Assembly: GCA_030704615.1 (NCBI GenBank)
Contig: CM060734.1
Coordinates: 49,662,001-49,726,000, forward strand
Length of the DNA: 64,000 nt
Origin: Takakia lepidozioides
Taxonomy: Eukaryota > Plantae > Bryophyta
Direction of reading: 5' to 3'
Notes under the pieces: generated by a model
Seen by the model: only the letters and a program-made list of their open reading frames with translations
Databases searched by the model: none
What the model was told of the DNA's origin: nothing
Program-made: the position numbers and the translations under genes
Shown: one piece after another, positions 9,612-63,938 of the stretch
Position numbering within the stretch: position 1 is the stretch's first letter
Layout: each line of letters starts with the position of its first letter

Positions 9612-12600
9612 AAATAGATGCACATACTTCGTGGGAGTTCAAGCCGAAAACTGACCGGATTTATTTGTCGAATAATTTTGAATGATCCCAGGCGTTGATA
9701 ATCCAACTTCCTTGATGGTCGCGAGGTTTGTATGTCCCGTCGAAGAAGCCACACACGATCTCTGACCTTGAACTGGGGTTGGAGTTGGCGACGTTGATCT
9801 GCATACTCCTTGTATTGTTTTCAAACTTCTGCGAGGTGGAATGTAAGCTTCTTGTGAATCATAGCAAGATGAATAACAAGGTTTTCTGCGGCAGGGCTTC
9901 CAATAGTCTTCATGTAGAAAGGGTTTGCTCGAGGATGACGACCATAATTGGAGAAAAATGGAGTTTGTTTGGTCGAAAAATGTATAGTGTTGTTGTAGGC
10001 AAACTCAGCCAATGACAGAAGGTCCGTTCAATTATCTTGGTGATAATTTATCGTACAGCGAAGATACTGCTCCAAAATTTGGTTTACACGTTCGGTTTGA
10101 CCATCAGTCTGTGGATGATTAGCTGTAGAGAGGTTGATCTTAGTATCCAATATGTGAAATAATCCCCTCTAAAAATTTGATATGAACTGTGGTCCTCGAT
10201 CAAATACGATGTCCTTCGGGAGTCCATGAATGCGGTAGATATTATTGAGGAAGAGTCTTGCAGTTTCCTCGCCGGTAACCGTCTTATTACATGGAATGAA
10301 ATGTGTCATATTTGTAAAACGATCTACAATAACAAGGATTGAATCGGTGGTCTTGGAAATTGGAAAGTCCGTAATAAAGTCCATAGACCCGGACGACCAT
10401 AGACCCTTGGGAATGGGTAATGGTTGAAGAAGGCCGTAAGGTCGATGTCGTGGTCCATTCGCTCTAGCACAAGTGTCGTAAAATTTTATAAATTCTTTCA
10501 CGAGTTTCCACATCTGCGGCCACCAATAGTCCTTGGATATCAATTCCATTGTTTTGTTGAAGTCGAAATGTCCTGCAGCCGGAAGATCATGACATGTTTG
10601 AAGAATTCAAAGTTGTGTAGGTCCTAGAGGTACATAGAGAAGTCCCTTGAAATAAAGTAAGTCATCTTTGAATTCGAAGTCGTTTGTAACATGTGGGTTG
10701 TCTCGAGGTCGATTTAGTTGACTTCGTAGTGTTGTAGCAAATTGGTCGCTCTTTAGTGCTTCCTGAATCTCTTGTATGATCTCTACATCGTCATAGGTGG
10801 ACATGGATAACATATTCACTTGGAGATTTGCTGGTTTCAAGATGATGGATTTCTGTTGGTCAAAAGCTGCATCCCCTTCTTTTGGCGCAAGATAAGATCG
10901 TCGAGAAAGAGCATCTGGTTTTCCTTGAAGATGTCTGGGACGGTAAGTTATAACAAAATCAAACCTTGCTAGTGACATACTCCATCTCGTTTGATGTCGA
11001 TTCAAAACACGAGCACTCATAAAATACTCGAGGTTTTTGTGATTGGTATAGACTGTGACCTGATGTTTAGCTCCCTCCAATAAATGACGTCACTCCTCAA
11101 AAGCATTGATAATCGCTAGAAGTTCTTTGTCATGGATTCCATAATTGATCTCCGCAGCGGAAAATTTGTGAGAACGAAAATCAACAGGGTGAAGTCAGCC
11201 ATTTGTACCATATTGAGAGAGTACCGCACCAAGTGCTAAGTCCGATGCATCTGCTTCCAAAAAGAATGGTTTAGATGGGTCTGCATGTACCAGTATTGGA
11301 GCCGTTGTAAATGTCTACTTCAGTCTTTTAAATGCTTGGTCAACCTTATCGTCCCATACAAATTTGTCCTTCCCTGTGAGTCGTGTCAATGGTGCAACAA
11401 TTTTGGAGTAGTCATTGATGAAGATTCTATAGAAATTTGCAAATCTTAGAAAACATTGTACATCTCGGACCGAAGTTGGTTTAATCCACTCGATGATGGT
11501 TTGTATTTTCTTCTGATCCATAAAGACTCATTTGTCGGAAATAATGTAGCCCAAAAATTCGACTTCAGATTGGTGGAAAAAACATTTTTCCAACTTGGCA
11601 TATAGGTTTTTTTTCCCTCAATTTATCAAGGACAAGACGTACATGGCGACCATGTTCTTCTTTATTATATGAAAATATCAAAATGTCGTCCAAATAAATG
11701 ACTACAAAGTCATCTAAAATTTCTCGAAAGATGTCATTCAAATATGTGTTGAAAAATTGCTAGAGCATTTGTAAGACCAAAAGGCATAACTGTGTATTCG
11801 AAATGTCTGTACCTTGTGCAAAAAACAGTCTTCCATTCGTCTCCTTCTTTTATTTGTACAAGGTAGTAAGCTCATCTCAAATCGATCTTTGTGAAAAAAT
11901 TTGCTCGTCTAAGTTGTTCGAGGAGTCCGGAAATCAACGGTAGTGGGTAACGATTTTTTATAGTGACTTTGTTCAGCCCACGATAGCCCACACACATGCG
12001 TAACGATCCGTCTTTCTTCTTCACAAATAAGATAGGTGCTCCCGCGGGTGATTTCGAATGTCGAATAAATTTTTTTGACAAATTATTCGCGTAAAGCAGC
12101 CAGCTCCGTCTGAGAAAAATTGTAGATCGGGCCGAATGGTGGTTGAGCTCCTTCTTGCAACTCAATTGCACAATCATAAGGTCGATGTTCTGACAACATG
12201 TCTGATTTTTCTTCTCGAAGACATCCTTGAAATCTTGATATTGAGTGGGTAATGTCGAAGTACCTTGGTCTGTTGTGGTTTTGATCGGAGTCACATAAAG
12301 TGCAAATGTCGCGTCTTTCTTCGTAGCTCTCATGAAGGCTCTAGCTCCAAGAAACAGGGGTTGAATACCTTTCGTACTTTTGCATTTTTGTCTTGCCGAA
12401 ATTTCTCGTGATCGCCAGTCGATGTCAGGATTATGAAGTTCAAACCAAGGAAGTCCAAGGATCACAGGATTCGTTGGAGACTGGATGACATTGAAAACAA
12501 TATGTGATGCTTGATTTTTAAGCTTCACTTCAAGGGGTTGAGTTTCATGGTCAATATTTCCTGATGCTAACGGTTGTCCATCGATGACTTCAACAGGGGC

Positions 12601-16170: not shown

Positions 16171-17719
16171 GGTACACTTTTAATTCAGATCGTTTTTTAT
16201 CATAAGACAAGCAGTTTCGGCATTGTACTACCAAAACATGTTAGTTTGTTAGTTGTCTGGATACCGTTGGTAAGGCACGTAGGAACTGAGACAGTGTCTG
16301 CAACGACTGAAGAGTGGAACTCTAGCGTCAAGATGACCGTAGAAAGCTGCATCGACAGCAGATTAGGCTGCCAATTCGGTACCAGAAACGGCGAGGTAAT
16401 CCTGTTCAAACAATACAGGACGACTGTTCCAATCCCAGATTGCGATCTCTCTTTTCTCTCGCCTTTCAAGTCCAGTAGGAACACACGGCGAGGAGCTTGG
16501 CAATTGGTGGAAGCGACATGTACAGCGATGAAATATCGCAATTTTATGGAGCTGATTAGCAGCAGGGCCAAATTATTGATTCAACAGCATTCACATGGTC
16601 TATTATTTGCATTTCTACTTCTTGGATGGATGAAAAATCTTGGAATTCGCCTTGAGGAGCTGGATGGATGAAATGACAACTCGCGCCAACTGGTCATCCA
16701 ATTGGATGGATGAAAAGCCAGCTTTCATTTGCCTCTAAGACTTTTCATCCATGTTGAATATTATATTATAGATCCTCCAAGGAAACAATAGTTTAATGAA
16801 TATTTTCTATTAGTTTATTAGGGCAAGTCTTATCTTGTTCTTCATCTAGTTCTTCATCTTGCTTAGTTTCCTCTTGTTGTCGTAGTGTTTGTTAGTTTGA
16901 GGCTTGAGGAGGCTAGATCCTAGGGCTCGTGGAGCTTGAAGCTCCCTAGTTAGGTAGAATTCTTGTAAGCTAAGACAAGTGGCCTAGCTTGTGGGCCATT
17001 GAGCCATTTCAATTGAGGGCCTTTGAACCATTTCATTTGTGAAGGAAGAGGGTAAATTCATGTGGAGGAAAGTGACTTGAGGACGAGTAGGAGGGGCTGG
17101 TGTGGACTTATGGACGAGAGCCCAAATGGAGGCCGCATAGAGTACCATTACTTGAGTCGATAGAGCATCCCAAGCACTCTCGCATAGAAAGGTTGATCCC
17201 ATCTTTCCATTTCACCATTTATGTATGTGATTCATTTATTTTCTAAGCAAAGCTTGAAGTTGAAAATCTCATTTAGGCTCTTCAAAAGAGGAGAGTGCAT
17301 TGTGGAATCCCACTATTTCATGTCTAGAATTGACAAGGGGAAGAATCCCATAGCCTATTGGAAAGGGTACCAATAGAGGCTTATATTTGAATTGTTTGAA
17401 GAATGAATCTTTGTGTTTTTGGTTACTAATTTGAAATATAGCCAGCTCTGGAAAATGAAGGCCAGCAGACTGGATCTATGATATATGGCCACTATAAGGC
17501 CACTATGTGCTAATCCCCACCCCCCCCACCAGCAAGCCATGGAGGCCTGGGGAGGGTGGGTTGTATTTTTTTGTCTTGGGGTTTGGGCGGGCTAATTTCG
17601 CTTGACAGCCGCTGCCCCAGAGTCGCGAGCAGCCTGGGAGGAGCCCGGGTGCTGCGCCTAGAGAGTAGGCACTCGATTACTAAAAGCGTGGAGGCAGCCG
17701 TGGCCCAGCCACGACGTAC

Positions 17720-18680
17720 ACCTCTCTTCGAAACTTGGGGAACCTTGCGAAACTTCATGACGAAAGCCTCTTCATCTTGGTTTTGGTGGCGATTTGAATT
17801 GCGATTTTCTTCAAGTTGCAAACGTCCAACGATTTCATCTACCGAGGGTAGGTCATTCTCACTGGAAATCACTCTGACAAAGTTATTGTACCTAGGCGGT
17901 AGAACATTTATTATTTGCTCCACTACGATATTGTCATAAGGTCTCTCACCAAACTCTGCTAGTTGGTTCAAGGTGTCTTGAACCAAATTCATGAACTCTG
18001 CAACAGTCGTCCCTTCATCCATACACAAGTTTGAAAAACAATTTTTGACTGCTAATTATTTTGCATTGTTTTTCACCTCAAACTGCCTCTAAAGCGTTGT
18101 CCAACATTCTTTTGGAGTTTTGGCGTTGAGAGTGAAAGGGATGATTTGATCTTTCACGTCTGACAACTTTATAATAAAGAGCGCTTTTCAGATCCTCTGT
18201 CATCGCAGTAGATCATCGTCCCTTGGGTATGATAGGACTACTGAGATCGTTGAAGATTTAGCTTCCTTAGAGTCTGGTTCAATATGCTCCCATAGATCTT
18301 CTCGTTTTGAAAATGCTCTGTATCCGAAACTTCCATATGACGCAGTTGGAAGCATATTCCAATTTGTACTGCTCAGAGAAAGAATTTTCAAGACCTGTCA
18401 TTACGACTAGTTCAGATCACCTAAGAGATAAGGAGAGAGGTAATATTTACAAGTGATATTAAACAGAAAATGGAGAAAGGACAGAAAAAGATAACATAGC
18501 ACAGAGTAAGTCTAGCCTTTCAGACGCAGCCTCGTCCTAAACTACGATCTATCATACTATCGACATAGTGTCTCAGAGTCTTACAGATGCAACTTTGTCC
18601 TAGACAAATTCAACCCTCCCTACAGATCCAACTCCATGAATCTTAGGCACTCGACATATACTATTTCCGCTCTGATACCA
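17720..18680 (-). mobile_element. Ty1/copia 5' region (PBS and gag), truncated
   Basis: tRNA-Met PBS TGGTATCAGAGC (reverse of 18669-18680); UBN2-like gag MDEGTTVAEF...LPPRY. Confidence 0.8.
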
Positions 18681-20260: not shown

Positions 20261-20423
20261 ATATTACACATATTCCTTGAAGAAGAAGTGAAAAAAAAAC
20301 TTTGAAATTGCAATTAGGATTTGGGAAAAAACTTCGTTCTCCCGCGGTAATAGGTTCATCTGCGGTTGTAGGCCCATATACCTCTAGAACATGATGCTAG
20401 AACGTGGGCCTGACCAAGCTCAT

Positions 20424-21177
20424 AGGCAGTTGCAGGATTGGGTCGGATCAAAAGCGGCACATATTGAGTCCATTGGAAGTCCATGGATTTTTGTCTTCTT
20501 GAGTCTATTGCTTTCAGTTTAATTTAAAAAAATAGATAGTAGTATCCATAATATTTTTAGTAAAGATCCCCCTCTTCAAATATTGAAAACATAAATTTTT
20601 ACTAGATATTTTAATCTTTAATTTGAAAAATATATTTAGACGTCAAAATCTAGAGTTTACAACCACTTGTCCATATACCACCTGGCACCTCTAGATTATA
20701 GGTTTGTATGTTTTTTTAGTAAAAAACGACACCTCAAAAACCCAAAACATAGTATGCTATGGACTAGAGCAAATTAAAACCTGTTTTTAGGTGCAAAATA
20801 GTCAATAGCTCCCAATTCCTAAGATAACTAGTCCATATAAAAGTGGATTTGGGTTGGATTTCAAAATGGCACCCCTAGTGTGTTTTCCTTTGTGCCATTG
20901 TATGAGTGTACATGATGTTTTTTCAGTCCATAAGATTTTATGTGTAACATCTGTACTCCATAATAATCATTTAAAAAGTCCATGGCTCTCTGGTACTTGA
21001 TTGTTTTTGCAATCTAACAATTGGTACACATACCTATTGTAGTTAGAAACCTTACACCATATAAATTTAGATGAAATATTGAGTTGTTGGAAAATATGGG
21101 TAAAACCATGGAGGGAGGTCACTGCAGAAGCTGCCATGTTACGCAAAACTGAGACACCCAATCCTGCAAATCCCTGG
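20424..21177 (+). mobile_element. AT-rich MITE (hAT-like termini), copy 1
   Basis: TIRs GGCAGTTGCAGGATTGGG / CCCAATCCTGCAAATCCCTG. An inverted second copy lies at 24200-24880. No clean TSD. Confidence 0.75.
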
Positions 21178-22141
21178 GGCCATGCTCACGTTCTAGCAGA
21201 TTCCCCGACACATTAGCAGAGCAGGTATATATATATATACCGAGAGTACTTCTACCTAACCAACTACCTCCACTAATGGGGCTTATCTCATCCGCGACAT
21301 CACCGTCAACCTCATTAACTACCCACACTACCCACATTAATGAGGCTTATCTCCACCACATCGTCGTCAAGCCTAAACCTATCAATAGAGAAAGAAACGG
21401 AGAGATACAATGGCCATACTGGGATGACTGCGTTTGGTTCAATGTTAAGATCAGCAGACCTACGCATACATTATTACTGAGTAATTATCTCGCCGCTCGG
21501 ACTGATTAGTACTGTCCATTGTCTCGCCAAACTGTGTTAGGTATAGGAGAAGGGCTTGAGTGGAGGGTCTTCCGCCATTTGAGGGCCGTAGCCCGAGGCC
21601 CAGGTCCCGAAAATGGCGGAAGGTTCGAAACGTGGGCCCTTCTCTTGCATAAAGAACTGCTCTCGAGGTGTAGCCTTACGAATTCGTAAAGAATTACCAT
21701 GATATTTTTCTTAGTTCATTTTAGGTCGTTTATAGGGCAGAAGATTGCACTGTACCTTCCAGCCCCCGTAAGGTGCTTGCTACGCTGACAAAATACCTTA
21801 TGAAATTCATAAGGTACTTTGTAATTGGGGCACTCGTTTTTATTTTATGCATGGTTTCTTTATCTTTACAAGAAAATTTTCTTTACAAAACATCACATGA
21901 CATGACTAGCCTTGAACTGAGATCAAACAACTGTGAGTATAGCTTTATTGAAAGAATTTGATCACCATCTTTGTCAAAGAATGTGAGATGACAAACTCAA
22001 TTGAATCAATGTTTCTAGAAACTATTGCTGGTAGACTATATCTGAATTAACATTCAAATTATCTATGTCTACTATAATTTCTGTAAGACTACAACCGAAT
22101 TATCTTCTATCGATCTTAATCTTAACAGATTTATACCGCAA

Positions 22142-24080
22142 TCAAGTTAGTTTTTGAGATGACTCTGAAGAATTATCCATTGAAGTTAATGCTGCAGAAG
22201 CAACAAGAGTATTTGGATCAACGATGTATTTTATAGTGATGGGACAGTTTTGGAAGTTATTGAAAATATGACTAGTATTACTATTCACATTAGCAGGACC
22301 ACGAGGCAAACGACCATGAATAGCCTCCAGCCGCTCTTTATACTTTGGAAGCTCGTCCTCAAACAGCTCATCCGGTACTTATCATCAACATCAGTAGATA
22401 CTCTCTTAGGTTCTGCTATAGGTACCATGGATTTCTCCTCGGAACAAGAAACAGAAGTAATAAGTTAACAATGATCTGATCCCCTGCACATTCTTTCTCC
22501 TACACGTAAACAAACAAATAATTAGATCTTATCACCAAATTGAAATACAACAATGTAAGAAGGAGATATGAAAGAGTTGTACTTTTATCTTCTCATATCC
22601 AATTTTTTCCTCACTGTATGCCTCTTCAAACCGAAGTAGACGACCATTCTTCAATTCTCCACTAATTATTCATTGCATTGCTCGATCTTTTCAATGTTCA
22701 TCAATGCGATTGTACATATCTTCACAGAAAGAAAAAAAATTAAAACCAAAGCACTCATGGAATTGGAATGTGCTGACCCTTACCATTGGAATTCCTTCAT
22801 ATTGTTTTCGTAAAGTCACTTCACTCACTTTCCATAAGAGATTGGATCTTTGTGACCAATCACTTCCATGGCATATTGCCAATGAAGAAGGGCTTCCTCC
22901 ATACGGGTAATTCCAACACCTATGCTTGTCTTATTGGAAAGAATTCTGCACTTCAACTCAGGAAACGTCGCAGTCAACTTATTGACGATCGAAAACAATT
23001 GGTTTCGACCAATTGGAGAAGTATTAAATCACACATCATCAGATTTTTTCCACTTCGGTTTAGCACACTGAAACAAGGGGTATGCCTCTGGTTTGTTATG
23101 AGGCCAAACAACATGGCGATGTCTAACCAATTCTTTGTAGGTGTTTATAACATCATCAACAGGGCAATCAATAGCAAGTCGGTGCCTATCAACAGAACAG
23201 TGCCTAATAATGTCTATACACCAATTTTTAGAAACACCTTGGCAAAACCTGAGCACCAACCCAATAGGAAGCTATACCTAACTGAATTCATCATAATCAA
23301 CATTCCTTAGCTCTTGTCCTCCCCGGATAAAAAAATTCCGCATACAGAAGTAGTCAAATCTGAGATTTAGGCCAGTTGCCAATGTCGACTGATAGATTTA
23401 TTGTGCCAACATTTTCCGCTCCTCTTCAATTGTCAGAATGTCAGATTTCTTGATAGTCTTCCCAAGACCAACATTTAACGCTTGCAATCCTGCTTCATCA
23501 TATGCTAATTTTACTCGACGATATCTCAAGTCAGTCAAAATGTTAAACGGCACTTAAGGTGCTTTCCCGGTCCCAAAAACACGGTAGCCCTGTCTCTGTC
23601 TGATTAACCTTTTAATGTTTCTTATCAAAGCCTGGATGCTGCAGTACAACTCAAAAATAGCTAGAACAATTTAAGCTATCTAAGCCATGGACATAGAAAA
23701 ACAGAAATATCATAATGGACAAGTGCCTTGTTGGAGGGTATAAACTGCCATCATTTTTTTTTGCCACCTGAATGACAAAAAGGGCAAGCATGTCCACAAG
23801 CTCTTTCACAGTGTTATAATTCTATGATAAATCTGCTATAGATTTTTCTGAATGGTATCATCTAAAGCGCCTCCACTCATAGAAAGCATTTTTGGCCGTT
23901 ATAGGGCCAACCCCCGAAAGGGGCAGTAGCTGTAAGGCGAAGTGGCTCTTAGTTGTGCCGGCTAAGGCCGGAGTCTTCTCTCTCTCTCAACATTTTTGGC
24001 CCATAGTTCTCCATGTTTACTTGCTCTCTGAATAAACTGGGTAGATTGCGATGATCTCTACTTAAGAGATCATCAACCTT
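22142..24080 (-). pseudogene. Crypton-type (DUF3504-like) tyrosine recombinase gene, intron-containing, decayed
   Basis: Manual translation: ELWAKNAFYEWRR...LALFVIQVAKKNDGSLYPPT/SIQALIR...FNILTD...ILTIEEERKML...NFFIRGGQELR...VSKN...PIGRNQL...LSNKTSI.VGITRM...MEVIGHKD..SYGK/YNR. Frame held from ~23897 to 22830 across an 88-nt intron, with scattered stops. Confidence 0.8.
23898..23988 (+). mobile_element. 5'-truncated non-LTR retro insertion ending in (TC)n
   Basis: Flanked by the direct repeat CATTTTTGGCC (23887-23897 and 23991-24001). The same 3' end recurs at ~63870-63938. Confidence 0.75.
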
Positions 24081-24199
24081 GTAATACATTGGGCATGAGA
24101 TTGAGGTCTCTCCACACCTTCTTTGAGTTAGCCGCTACTTCCATTGGTGGAGTTGGAAGCACGAACCGAGTGGAACCTTAATTCATCGTAAAGAACTGC

Positions 24200-24880
24200 C
24201 CACAGGGTTTTATCCATATTTGTTCAACAACTCAATATTTCATCTAAATTTATATGGTGTAGGGTTTCTAACTACAATAGGTGTGTGTACCAATTGTAAG
24301 ATTGCAAAAACAATCATGTACCAGAGAGCCATGGACTTTTAAAATTGACTATTGTGGCCTGCAGATGTTATACATAAAATCTTATGGACTGAAAAAACAT
24401 CATGTACACTCATATAATGACATAAATGAAAACACATTAGGGGTGCCATTTTTAAATCCAACCCAAATCCATTTTTATGTGGACTAATTATCTTAGGAAT
24501 TGAGAGCTATGGACTATTTTGCACCTAGTTGATTTGCTCTAGTCCATAGCATCTTATGTTTTGGGTTTTTGAGGTGTCTTCTTTTACGAAATATGCATAC
24601 AAACCTATAATCTAGAGGTGCTACGTAGTATATGGACAAGTGGTTGTAAATTCTAGATTTTCATGTCTAAATATATTTTTTAAATTATAGATTAAAATAT
24701 CTAGTAAAGAATATTTTCAATCTTTGAGAAAGGACTCTTTACTAAAAATGTTATATATACTACTATCTATTTTTTCTTAAAATAAACTGAAAGCAATAGA
24801 TTCAAAAACAAAAACTTCCATGGACTTCCAATGGACTCAACATGTGCCGCTTTTGATCCACCCAATCCTGCAACTGCCCC
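24200..24880 (-). mobile_element. AT-rich MITE, copy 2 (inverted, one end missing)
   Basis: Reverse complement aligns by eye with 20424-21110; ends CCCAATCCTGCAACTGCC. Confidence 0.75.
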
Positions 24881-26429
24881 GGAATGATTCACTCGCAACT
24901 TCATTCTCAATCAATTGCGACCCAGTCTCTATTAAACTGGAGCATGATATTGATGTTGATATCAATTCAGATGTTAAGTTGATATGGCATGATGAAACTT
25001 GCGGAGCTTGTCTGCAATCACCTGAATCTCCTCAATCACCTATTGAAAATCAAGATGAGTCTTGTCTGTTTGTGAATTTCTACAATCATCTCGTGTCCCT
25101 CAATGTAGAGGATTTCGATGTTGCTTATGGTGCTCCTCGTCATGAGTCTCCTGATTCTCCTGTTCCGGTTGAGTGTCAGTTTCCTACTCACACTGTTTGA
25201 TGTATGTGCAAATTCAAGACAAATTCTCGGTTCTTTAATGTCAATGAAAATGAATTAGAGAATATTAATACAAGAGGCTGATGGATACACATATACCAGT
25301 GTAAATATACCCTCATGAATGAGTTCGAGCATTTCAGTTGCGCGAGTTCCTCACTCGACCTTGTGGGAACAGTTAGCGATGTTGAGATGGTTGCGGGTGT
25401 CTTCATTGCGAATGACTGCATCTCCTTCAAGCATAACAAACTTTTCATTGCTAATCCCTGCCAAATAACTCTAGCATATAGGTAATTCTCTTGGTTGTCC
25501 ACTCAAACCAATAACCAATGTTTTTTTAATGTCTTTTATGGTTTTCAATTTTAGGTGACTCGATCTCTGATGCCAAAGTAGAGCCTGATCTTTCCTTTTT
25601 GTTAACATGGAGTGAATGCAGGAACACCAACTCCAATTGGGTATAATGCACCTTACAGTTAGCAAGTGATGGCATTTTGATTTCCTGCCCTTCTTTTGAT
25701 ACACTTGTCTAGTATAATCTCGAAGCTCGTTCTAGCTTAGTCAATTTACCTGCAACAGACAACAGATTCTTTTTTAGCCTTGGTACATGAAGCATATCTT
25801 GTACTTGGGTTATCAAACCTGATGTCGTACTAATTGTTATTGTGACATGTCCTACAACATGTTGAGTGCTATCATCTCCTAGATATACATGCAAAGGAGA
25901 ATTGAAAGTCTGGTAGTGACTAAACCACTCACTGTTAAGTTTTATATGTTGCGATGCACCTGAGTCAAGATACCAGGTATCTTTATAAAGTGTACTTGCA
26001 TTCAGACAGACAATATACAATTGAATCCCCATTGTTTCCCTCCACTGTAGAAACAAAGACATTTCTTCGGGACACCAAAAGGACGATTGCTTATTACTTG
26101 GTTTCCTACATAGGGTTTTGGAGGAAATCCACTCCGTCCTTGATTGATTTTTTTCCGTTTCTTGCCTTGCTTTCCAGCATAAAATGCTGAAGATGACGAC
26201 CTCCATTTTTAGGAGACCCAAATGGCAAAGACGTTCATGGCTTCTCCTTGCTGTAACTTTCCACATAACATTGGAAGCGTCATCTCAGGTAGGTTAGTCA
26301 CGGTGGTTACAAAAGACCGCCATGAAGGAGGAAAACTCCCTAGGAGTTGCATACAAGCATCTTCATCTAAAATTTCCAGACGAGCTGCAGCCATCTGATT
26401 TAACATTCTTTGGAATATCTCTAGGATTA

Positions 26430-28135
26430 CACAAGAAACTTTTGGAGGATCCCTTGGGTGTGTTGCAGGGGAAGGGCCGATTCCCCCTGCAATCACACAG
26501 GGGATCCTTGTTTCCCCTGTTTCCCACAGAGGGAAAATTGACAATAAATCGTGTCAGGGGATCTGTGTGTCAGGGGACCAAACGTGGCTAAACTCGAATT
26601 AGGTTAGAATTTTGAGTTTTAAAGAGCTCTTCGAGTTTTTTGTGACTGGATTGGACGCTAGTTTTAGTGGCAGGTGGAGATAGGTGGAAATTATTTCTAG
26701 AGGGAGTACACCGTATACGGAAGCAAATGGGGGGGTTCGCCGTGCTGACGATCGGTTATGAATTGAGCTTTCCCCTGAAGAACAAGTGGTGGAGATGTTG
26801 GCAGAATGTGAAAGAATGAGGCACAACGTGTGCGATAGCACTGTGGAAGCGTCGTAAGTATGGAAGGAGGTGCCAATCCATTGTACTTTTTATCCCTGAA
26901 GGAAATGACTAGCCTTGTTTGTTTGTGGCTATGACAGTGGTTTTTGTGTGACTTCACAGGCCCATGCTGGGGAGCATACTCTTCACACTTAACCAAGTAT
27001 GGCTTTGATTGTAGTTTGTTTGTTCATTCTAAAAAATTGACTGATAACATTGTGTACATACCCTGTGTTGCATGAGACATTTGTTGTGTGGAATAGGCAG
27101 CATAGATTTAGCCCATGTCTTGGCTACTCCCATGGGGGTGATTCGCTCAGACAAACAGGGGCAAAGAGTCAGTACTCTAGCAGTTTTGAAATGTGCTAAT
27201 ACAAGAGGTCACATGTCTTGTGCCCTTGTGGCGCATTGTCCATTGGTTTCAATCATAGTGAGTCTGTACTGCATGTGGTTGAACTGAACTGGGGCACTCT
27301 GGCTCTGAGCAGCAAACTACAGGGCAGTTCGGTCTCTTTGCCTAAACAGCTTGAATGCTGAAAGAACATATACTCTGTTGAATTCTTTTATCGTTGTTTG
27401 TAACAAAGGTACTCTCTCACTCTCTCTCCCACTCTGTATTTGTGTACCTTGGATCCTTCAGGCCTCCCACATACATTTATCTGTCAGGCATTAGTGTGAG
27501 GGTTTGCTGCTGTTTTCTTTGGCAGGGATATACGCGCTGAATTATTTGTGTCATTTGGTCCTGTGGTGCTGTGGCACCATAGCTGGGGAGAATAAGGTGA
27601 AAGAGGGGCTTAAAATGTCTATCCAGGCCATTCAGGCAAGCTACCTGCTGACAAGCCCAAGCTGATCGATGTGGATCGGCTAATTGTTGAGCCCATTATT
27701 ACTTTGAATTTGAATTTGCTTTGAGCCAGATGGCCCTCCTTGTGGTGTGCAATCTACTGACCTTAGTCGAGGTGATGGCTACAGTCACCAAGGGTCCATT
27801 TATTTATTTTATTTTTTCTTCTTTCTTTAAAGGGGATGAAGCCCCGATAATTTATCTATGGGGAAAAAAAAACCATTTTCCCCTACTTAAAAATACACAT
27901 GTTATTCCCTGTGGTCTCATTTTTCCCTACTTAAATACACATGTTATTCCCCTGTGATCCCATTTTCCAAGGGTCCCATTTTCCCTACAAGACACATGGT
28001 ATTCCCTGTGGTCCCATTTTCCCCTCCGACACGAGGGGATCCTCGTGCGCAGCGAATTTCACTTCAAATCCCCTACGGCTTCGTGGGGGATTTGAAGTAT
28101 TTACCCAGCAGGGGACTAACCAAAAGATTCTTGTG
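26430..28135. mobile_element. Non-autonomous TIR element with CAC termini and 3-bp TTA TSD (CACTA/CMC-like)
   Basis: TIRs CACAAGAAACTTTTGG / CCAAAAGATTCTTGTG; TTA at 26427-26429 and 28136-28138; subterminal TTCCCCTG repeats. Excision restores the copia gag frame. Confidence 0.85.
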
Positions 28136-63869: not shown

Positions 63870-63907
63870 AAAGTGGCTCTTAATAGTCATGCCGGCTTTG
63901 GCCGGAG

Positions 63908-63938
<31 letters not shown>
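63870..63938 (+). repeat. Non-LTR retroelement 3' end with (TC)n tail
   Basis: AAGTGGCTCTTA...GCCGGCnnnGGCCGGAGTCT(TC)n, as at 23940-23988. Confidence 0.65.

Follow-up and report, generated by a model that had tools for sequence, protein, structure and literature searches.

Does the bryophyte Takakia lepidozioides carry a working recombinase gene that lists of open reading frames (ORFs) fail to display, the remains of a transposon, or a decayed host gene? The question is raised by a 64,000-nucleotide (nt) stretch of its genome (contig CM060734.1 of assembly GCA_030704615.1, forward-strand positions 49,662,001 to 49,726,000; hereafter the window), whose minus strand holds an interrupted coding sequence with the motifs of a Crypton-type tyrosine recombinase. 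A preliminary description, made from the letters of the window alone, had called it a hidden recombinase gene. The gene remnant is real, but the working gene is not: with nine in-frame stops, the locus is a dead relic without present function. It is likely to be the dead recombinase gene of a Crypton-like DNA transposon, from a land-plant lineage of DUF3504 (CryptonA-like) tyrosine recombinases.

We read the minus strand of positions 21900-24400 of the window, translated it in three frames, and compared the proteins of relatives with the window by tBLASTn, matching exons separately. A multi-exon, recombinase-like coding remnant runs from ~24057 to 22142. The preliminary description had reported one minus-strand frame across an 88-nt GC-AG intron, broken by stops so that only a 76-amino-acid (aa) ORF shows; the sequence and a spliced relative, P0048, agree with this, and every motif it quoted is present on the minus strand. 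Its extent of ~23897 to 22830 was in the right frame and too short: the remnant reaches upstream to at least 24057 and downstream through a third and a last exon.

All exons lie on the minus strand. The upstream part of exon 1 (23991-24057) reads RASKHGELWAKN (KHGELWAKN), matches RKRNKHSETWAR of P0048, L005 and L006 weakly in alignments, and is severed from the remainder by an insert. The second part of exon 1 (23727-23896), running from AKNAFYEW to VIQVAKKNDGSLYPPT, belongs to an N-terminal QRICH1-like domain; translated from 23896 to 23727, it gives AKNAFYEWRRFR, a stop, YHSEKSIADLS, a second stop and NYNTVKELVDMLALFVIQVAKKNDGSLYPPT. It is 53% identical to residues 184-235 of P0048 by tBLASTn and aligns with L001, L005 and L006 as well. 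Intron 1 (23639-23726, 88 nt) has a GC donor and an AG acceptor, and its position is conserved among relatives. The spliced window reading LYPPT/SIQALIR resembles LYPPR/SLQGLLR in P0048, the product of a spliced transcript from a related plant, and an intron at the equivalent position is read through in the unspliced predictions P0058 and P0059. Exon 2 (22828-23638) holds the linker and the catalytic domain, with the motifs FIRGGQELR, VSKNW, PIGRNQL, SNKTSIG and IGHKDPISYGK (IRGGQELR at 23328-23305, VSKNW at 23235-23221, SNKTSI at 22938-22921, IGHKD at 22860-22846 and ISYGK at 22842-22828).

Exon 2 is followed by a non-coding spacer of 107 nt (22721-22827), with GTGAGT starting at 22828 and a pyrimidine tract and AG ending at 22720, which is probably intron 2 of the window subfamily. 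The exon frames on its two sides agree only with a 1-nt offset, which we read as decay. In P0042 and P0051, relatives from the same clade as the window copy, coding also ends directly after S-Y-[AG]-[KQ]; L001 and L006 have no intron at this position. Exon 3 (22574-22720) reads KDRAMQ, a stop and IISGELKNGRLLRFEEAYSEE, and contains two stops in all; its identity is 56% to residues 387-425 of P0059, 49% to P0015 and 47% to P0061 (tBLASTn), with matches in L001-L006. The last exon (22142-22378) carries the C-terminal motif HIFNNFQNCPITIKY and a natural stop at 22144-22142. It contains the FNNFQNCPITI segment that the preliminary description had noticed further downstream, and the motif F-N-x-F-x-N-C-x-I-T-I finds a weak but repeated match in L005 and L006 (expectation value (E) ~0.02) and also matches the C-terminus of the animal-type protein P0063.

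The nine in-frame stops fall at 23860, 23824, 23556, 23400, 23280, 23274, 23031, 22693 and 22672: two in exon 1 (TGA 23860-23858 and TAG 23824-23822), five in exon 2 and two in exon 3 (22693-22691 and 22672-22670). There are no frameshifts within exons 1-3. The longest minus-strand ORF here in the mechanical list is the one of 76 aa at 23029-23259. In two sequencing runs guessed to be RNA no contig covers the gene and contigs are placed here on repeats alone, which hints weakly that it is silent. The 367 nt of 22271-22637 are missing from a paralogous contig of the source genome, ~91% identical, in which 22270 adjoins 22638; this indicates at least one further decayed copy in the genome.

Exon 1 was interrupted by a very abundant short repeat. 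The insert is real, as described before, although its bound of 23988 needed correction: an 11-bp target-site duplication (23887-23897 and 23991-24001) places it at 23898-23990, a length of 93 nt. Removal of the insert and one copy of the duplication restores a continuous frame, ELWAKN/AFYEW, as the preliminary description had expected. Contigs of the source organism's runs placed on the window at >=80% identity served as a proxy for copy number, and such depths do not give true copy numbers. By this measure the summed depth over the insert is 13,000-49,000 per bin against ~60 per single-copy contig (200-800x single copy), with loose contig ends at ~23907-23920 and 23983-23988. The repeat is also found in runs guessed to be RNA, and scans of 19-26.5 kb with Rfam and for tRNAs gave it no name. 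A second, partial copy of it lies at 63871-63922 of the window.

To which family does the remnant belong? Exon 2 is 46% identical to P0048 over 252 aa (E 2.5e-60) and 43% identical to P0051 over 260 aa (E 5.8e-62) by tBLASTn. This similarity is far beyond chance, and the same searches find a single recombinase copy in the window. A phmmer search with an 80-aa piece (23271-23032) against 1.84 billion representative proteins returned 47 matches at E <= 1e-3, the best at E 1e-15 and the majority short ORFs. Longer relatives are KAL3687813 of Riccia sorocarpa (P0015) and P0048, a 489-aa product of a spliced transcript contig; further ones are R1sor_000615 of Riccia (P0061), LOC112277641 of Physcomitrium patens (P0062) and others in plant assemblies. 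Word-indexed protein searches, with a ceiling of 8,000 candidates that was reached, added few plant relatives. The nearest named relatives of the window copy are bryophytes.

Three relatives score narrowly above the gathering cut-off of 29.7 bits of the Pfam family DUF3504 (PF12012), namely P0015 (31.7 bits), P0059 (32.7 bits) and P0029 (30.1 bits); P0048 and P0051 score just under it (28.2 and 25.2 bits). A profile built from the plant proteins reaches the animal-type P0063 at E 2.4e-15, a protein that scores 117 bits with DUF3504 and also contains a QRICH1 domain and Phage_integrase. P0063 used as a query in turn brought up close animal-type proteins alone. We further modelled residues 128-425 of the relative P0059 with AlphaFold from a 30-row alignment (mean predicted local distance difference (pLDDT) 78, predicted template modelling score (pTM) 0.64). 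The top solved-structure matches of the model are Cre complexes (E 7e-6, probability 1.0, template modelling score ~0.5, ~260 columns), and Tn1549 integrase, XerA and QRICH1 (chain 9hjt_H) come next; 31 matches in all have E <= 1e-3. The catalytic domain of P0059 is thus predicted to have a Cre-like fold. Likewise, a language model places both the C-terminal window piece and P0059 next to clusters of Phage_integrase and DUF3504. A profile search of the sequences of solved structures with the plant alignment gave no recombinase match. DUF3504 is the recombinase domain of Cryptons, and the recombinases of DIRS and Ngaro elements have no DUF3504 match at all (Kojima and Jurka, PMC3212892).

The active site gives the same picture. 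The order R / K / K-x-x-R / H / Y is conserved across the protein alignment of plant relatives, and the window copy still has four of the five catalytic residues. Arg I (M-I-R-G-G-Q-E-L-R in plant relatives) and Lys (G-x-[SN]-K-N-W) are kept; at box II the relatives have [ST]-N-K-[ST]-x-R and the window S-N-K-T-S-I, at His T-G-H and I-G-H, and at Tyr K-S-Y and I-S-Y, respectively. The second Arg has decayed to Ile (ATA, 22923-22921), a change private to the window copy. In every plant-clade member read at box II, Lys replaces the first His; the animal-type proteins have N-H-S-L-R here, so Lys-for-His is a signature of the plant clade. All three points, namely the R-K-(HxxR)-H-Y layout of Crypton/DUF3504 proteins, the Lys and the lost Arg, had been proposed from the window alone and are borne out by the relatives. 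A complete catalytic set in an intact frame is not found in the window copy, with its nine stops and its Ile at Arg II; intact plant relatives have every catalytic residue except His II, where Lys stands. Type IB topoisomerases have Lys at the position that matches His II, so Lys need not abolish catalysis.

Two relatives have gone another way. In Physcomitrium LOC112277641, Lys and box II are lost and the sequence stops short of His and Tyr. In Riccia R1sor_000615 (L003 10001-16286, CM100799.1), Phe takes the place of the catalytic Tyr, and a BTB-domain gene follows ~3 kb downstream. Judged by these sequences, both are likely domesticated.

We placed the window copy, as exon 2 only and with X at stops, in a 35-row tree (IQ-TREE, with SH-aLRT branch support). 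The tree included five animal-type proteins; Glomhopper, CryptonF/S/I and ZMYM sequences were outside it. All plant proteins group together (support 100), and a long branch separates them from the animal-type five. The window copy belongs to a subclade of 17 rows (support 99) that excludes the L001 group as well as the genes of Riccia and Physcomitrium. The other 16 members of this subclade are short pieces of ORF from several assemblies and metagenomes; they diverge from one another, and decay is visible in many. One of them, a decayed DUF3504 fragment present in L008-L013 (metagenome and Logan contigs), has a THI4-like gene on one side and a CtpA-type protease gene on the other; this fragment is a fixed relic in plant DNA, from a plant that occurs in many metagenome samples. 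At the DNA level 13 related loci match the window at 64-67% identity, inside exon 2 alone, and at no more than 67% identity the ends of the window copy are not definable by comparison. Between two Riccia paralogue loci, likeness is limited to the gene and ~500 bp upstream; one of the two is surrounded by inverted repeats pieced together from AT-rich repeats, which the other lacks.

A sister subfamily provides defined ends. Two copies in one plant assembly (European Nucleotide Archive ERZ25073694), L001 8297-11672 and L005 9579-13263, are 92-95% identical, L005 having one extra insertion of 339 nt. Their likeness ends at exactly the same base in each, and beyond it lie unrelated flanks. The 3.4-kb unit starts with AGACGCAGCAACGACTTTT and ends with its inverted form plus five extra bases, giving a terminal inverted repeat of 17/19 bases in L001 and 16/19 in L005. 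No internal copy of the ends exists within the unit, and no target duplication or direct repeat is visible in the flanks of L001 or L005. The ends expected of a Crypton, without terminal inverted repeats and with 4-6 bp direct repeats or terminal-target microhomology, are therefore not those of L001 and L005. The content of the unit is a four-exon recombinase gene alone, and neither reverse transcriptase nor any further protein for transposition is encoded. The four exons were read by mapping L006, a spliced transcript contig, on L001; its first intron lies exactly at the 88-nt spacer of the window. If abutted in a circle, the ends of L001/L005 would form arm / 5-nt spacer / arm, like the core site of a recombinase. 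The L005 unit is located in a GAG/GAC-rich stretch, and a lectin receptor kinase gene is present on one of the two ERZ25073694 contigs.

These relatives suggest how the element may once have worked. The intact protein would have had an N-terminal helical domain with the W-A-x-K-x-F-x-x-W motif and a Cre-like catalytic domain with Arg I, Lys, K-x-x-R, His and the nucleophile Tyr, as relatives do. Its gene, with conserved spliceosomal introns, would have stood alone in a sharp-ended unit like the 3.4-kb one of the related plant, with its 17/19 terminal inverted repeat. According to the published Crypton model, such an element would be excised as a circle, whose joined ends would then recombine site-specifically with a short target to integrate it. 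The window copy is unable to transpose in this way: it has nine stops, Ile for Arg II and the 93-nt insert, and no contig in the two putative RNA runs.

Two copies of a longer repeat, ~690 nt each, bracket the recombinase relic in inverted orientation. The left one (20395-21204, plus strand; depth 9,000-14,600) is 89% identical over 20425-21110 to the inverted right one (24203-24878, minus strand; depth 4,800-9,000), which lacks the inner 65-95 nt of the left. The left repeat has short inverted ends of its own, ~45-50 nt long (20395-20443 and 21156-21204). Between the arms the summed depth is 125-335 in all but one bin, against ~60 for single-copy contigs, which indicates that the arm repeat is abundant in its own right. 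It is ~700-800 nt long, shows neither coding capacity nor a Pfam match, and is represented by contigs in two runs guessed to be RNA as well. Since the repeat is abundant by itself, has its own inverted ends, and clade relatives of the relic lack flanking inverted repeats, we did not count the arms as the ends of the element. Apart from the recombinase remnant, Pfam finds no domain at 21.1-24.2 kb of the window. Outside the right arm, Copia-type gag, Pol beta-barrel and gag-pre-integrase pieces occupy 25471-26544 on the minus strand and end ~600 nt from the arm; the retroelement looks truncated or interrupted there. Another piece of Copia gag is found at 17510-18028, and one of RNase H at 10607-11080.

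How firmly can the relic be called a transposon? Several observations weigh against doing so. Neither the L001 end motif nor the ends of the L001 unit appear in the window by motif search or alignment, and short inverted repeats between the window arms occur at chance level only, so the ends of the window copy were not found; because of this, we infer its transposon status from its relatives. Each of the nine stop-free pieces of the window, run alone, gave no useful Pfam match; it is three intact relatives that pass DUF3504. The related plant unit has a terminal inverted repeat, a feature that Cryptons lack according to their published description (PMC13465315). In the source genome, sequence between the arms is repeated to no greater degree than that beyond them (~2-5 contig-equivalents at >=80% identity), and recent amplification of the window copy is thus not supported. 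Finally, conserved introns and relatives that are host genes leave room for a host gene that was duplicated and then decayed.

On that last account, the relic would be a pseudogene that arose by segmental or local duplication of a domesticated host DUF3504 gene at the DNA level and then decayed, and not a transposon copy at all. It would explain why introns were retained and one intron position is conserved, and it has models in Physcomitrium LOC112277641, a named gene without catalytic residues, and in Riccia R1sor_000615, with its Phe at the Tyr position beside a BTB gene; the paralogous contigs, ~90% identical, even extend over the flank beyond the arms. We nevertheless hold it to be distinctly improbable. 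The window copy sits in a separate clade of divergent ORF fragments and not nearest the host-like genes, its preserved Arg I, Lys, His and Tyr fit descent from a lineage that still had catalytic residues, and a related subfamily has the behaviour of a mobile unit with fixed bounds, its two copies, L001 and L005, sharing termini in unrelated flanks. Together the evidence is better explained by a transposon subfamily that is old, present in many copies and mostly dead than by a single host gene.

The arms call for a different kind of doubt, about where the transposon ended. If the 690-nt arms were its own long terminal inverted repeats, the element would be a unit of ~4.5 kb (20395/20425-24878) with a DIRS-like layout but no reverse transcriptase, and the abundant arm copies would be non-autonomous derivatives. 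The arms are 89% identical, inverted and close around the gene, and with ~150-250 depth-based arm copies in a genome of at least ~325 Mb, reckoned from 5,084 stretches of 64 kb, two within 5 kb of the relic would occur by chance in far fewer than 1 in 1,000 cases, as a rough estimate. As such proximity is improbable by chance, some link, be it as inverted repeats of the element or through targeted insertion, is kept as a rival. We consider this structure rather unlikely, in view of arms 30-70x more abundant than the DNA between them, of the left arm's own inverted ends, which resemble those of a self-contained element, of the clade relatives L007 and L008 and the L001/L005 unit, none of which has long flanking inverted repeats, and of outer ends without visible target duplication. 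The relic might also be a fragment of a tyrosine-recombinase retrotransposon of DIRS, Ngaro or PAT type that lost its reverse transcriptase, given its recombinase fold, the flanking inverted repeats and the retroelement pieces nearby. That origin is extremely improbable: the adjacent retroelement domains (gag, Pol beta-barrel, gag-pre-integrase) are Copia-type, the relatives match DUF3504, which DIRS and Ngaro recombinases do not (PMC3212892), and the related 3.4-kb unit has no room for a reverse transcriptase. Pfam finds none between the arms either, and neither there nor in L001/L005 is the recombinase accompanied by reverse transcriptase and RNase H. Of the DIRS layout, the window does show inverted arms, 690 nt long, although their repeat is also abundant by itself, and L001/L005 have no internal copy of their ends. 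The preliminary description was right that no reverse transcriptase adjoins the gene, and its inference that the gene is not DIRS-like is supported.

Taking the locus as a Crypton-type relic, we compared it with known systems. Close in architecture is animal CryptonA/DUF3504, represented by P0063 and by a 'ZMYM2-like' protein of Halichondria, with the same order of an N-terminal W-A...F..W domain and a DUF3504/Cre-like domain, the same order of catalytic motifs, a similar C-terminal F-N-...-C-x-I-T-I and the recombinase as sole encoded protein. The plant proteins differ from these in sequence (20-23% identity; ~30 bits with DUF3504 against 117 for P0063), in N-K-[ST]-x-R instead of N-H-S-L-R, in the conserved introns of their genes and in their land-plant host. 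Glomhoppers are DUF3504 CryptonA elements of Glomeromycota, the mycorrhizal fungi (PMC13465315). Like the plant family they place DUF3504 outside animals, in repeat-rich DNA and with many truncated or intron-containing copies; unlike it, by their description, they are nested in animal CryptonA and have a canonical active site and no consistent intron positions (PMC13465315). CryptonF-1_cRei of Chlamydomonas reinhardtii has been observed to transpose, its 5-nt terminal motif recombining site-specifically with a target almost identical to that motif (PMC9977147). It too is a Crypton of green plants in the broad sense, but it belongs to the CryptonF lineage and to a green alga, and no terminal or target motif like its own was demonstrable for the L001/L005 units.

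Host genes derived from DUF3504 include ZMYM2/3/4, QRICH1, KCTD1 and WOC (PMC3212892). They share fold and family with the plant proteins, among which LOC112277641 and R1sor_000615 seem to be their parallels. Such domesticated genes are conserved and expressed and have lost their catalytic residues, whereas the window copy keeps most of these residues and is full of stops, which marks it as a relic rather than a domesticated gene. Cre of phage P1, the best structural match of the modelled relative, shares only 14-17% sequence identity and differs from the plant family in being prokaryotic and intronless, with His in its H-x-x-R box.

Cryptons and DUF3504 recombinases have so far been described from fungi, animals, stramenopiles and one green alga. 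In the searchable literature, with Repbase outside the comparison, we found no description of a Crypton in land plants, bryophytes or moss, and none on plants for DUF3504. Our broader proposal is tentative, and we would put it at slightly short of an even chance: land plants may carry their own old Crypton-type lineage, recognizable by conserved introns, by an N-K-x-x-R box in the active site and by short inverted ends that, once joined, give an arm-spacer-arm recombination site. This lineage would date back at least to the divergence of liverworts from mosses and would repeatedly have given rise to domesticated genes, of the BTB-linked and the LOC112277641 type; the abundant flanking repeat of 700-800 nt was perhaps mobilised or targeted by the same recombinase, and the window copy would be one of many fossils. 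As one more fossil of a plant Crypton-type recombinase, that copy has no function of its own. If the proposal is true, the land-plant lineage would extend the host range of a rare class of transposons, provide a natural Lys-for-His variant of the recombinase active site, and constitute a source for plant genes derived from DUF3504.

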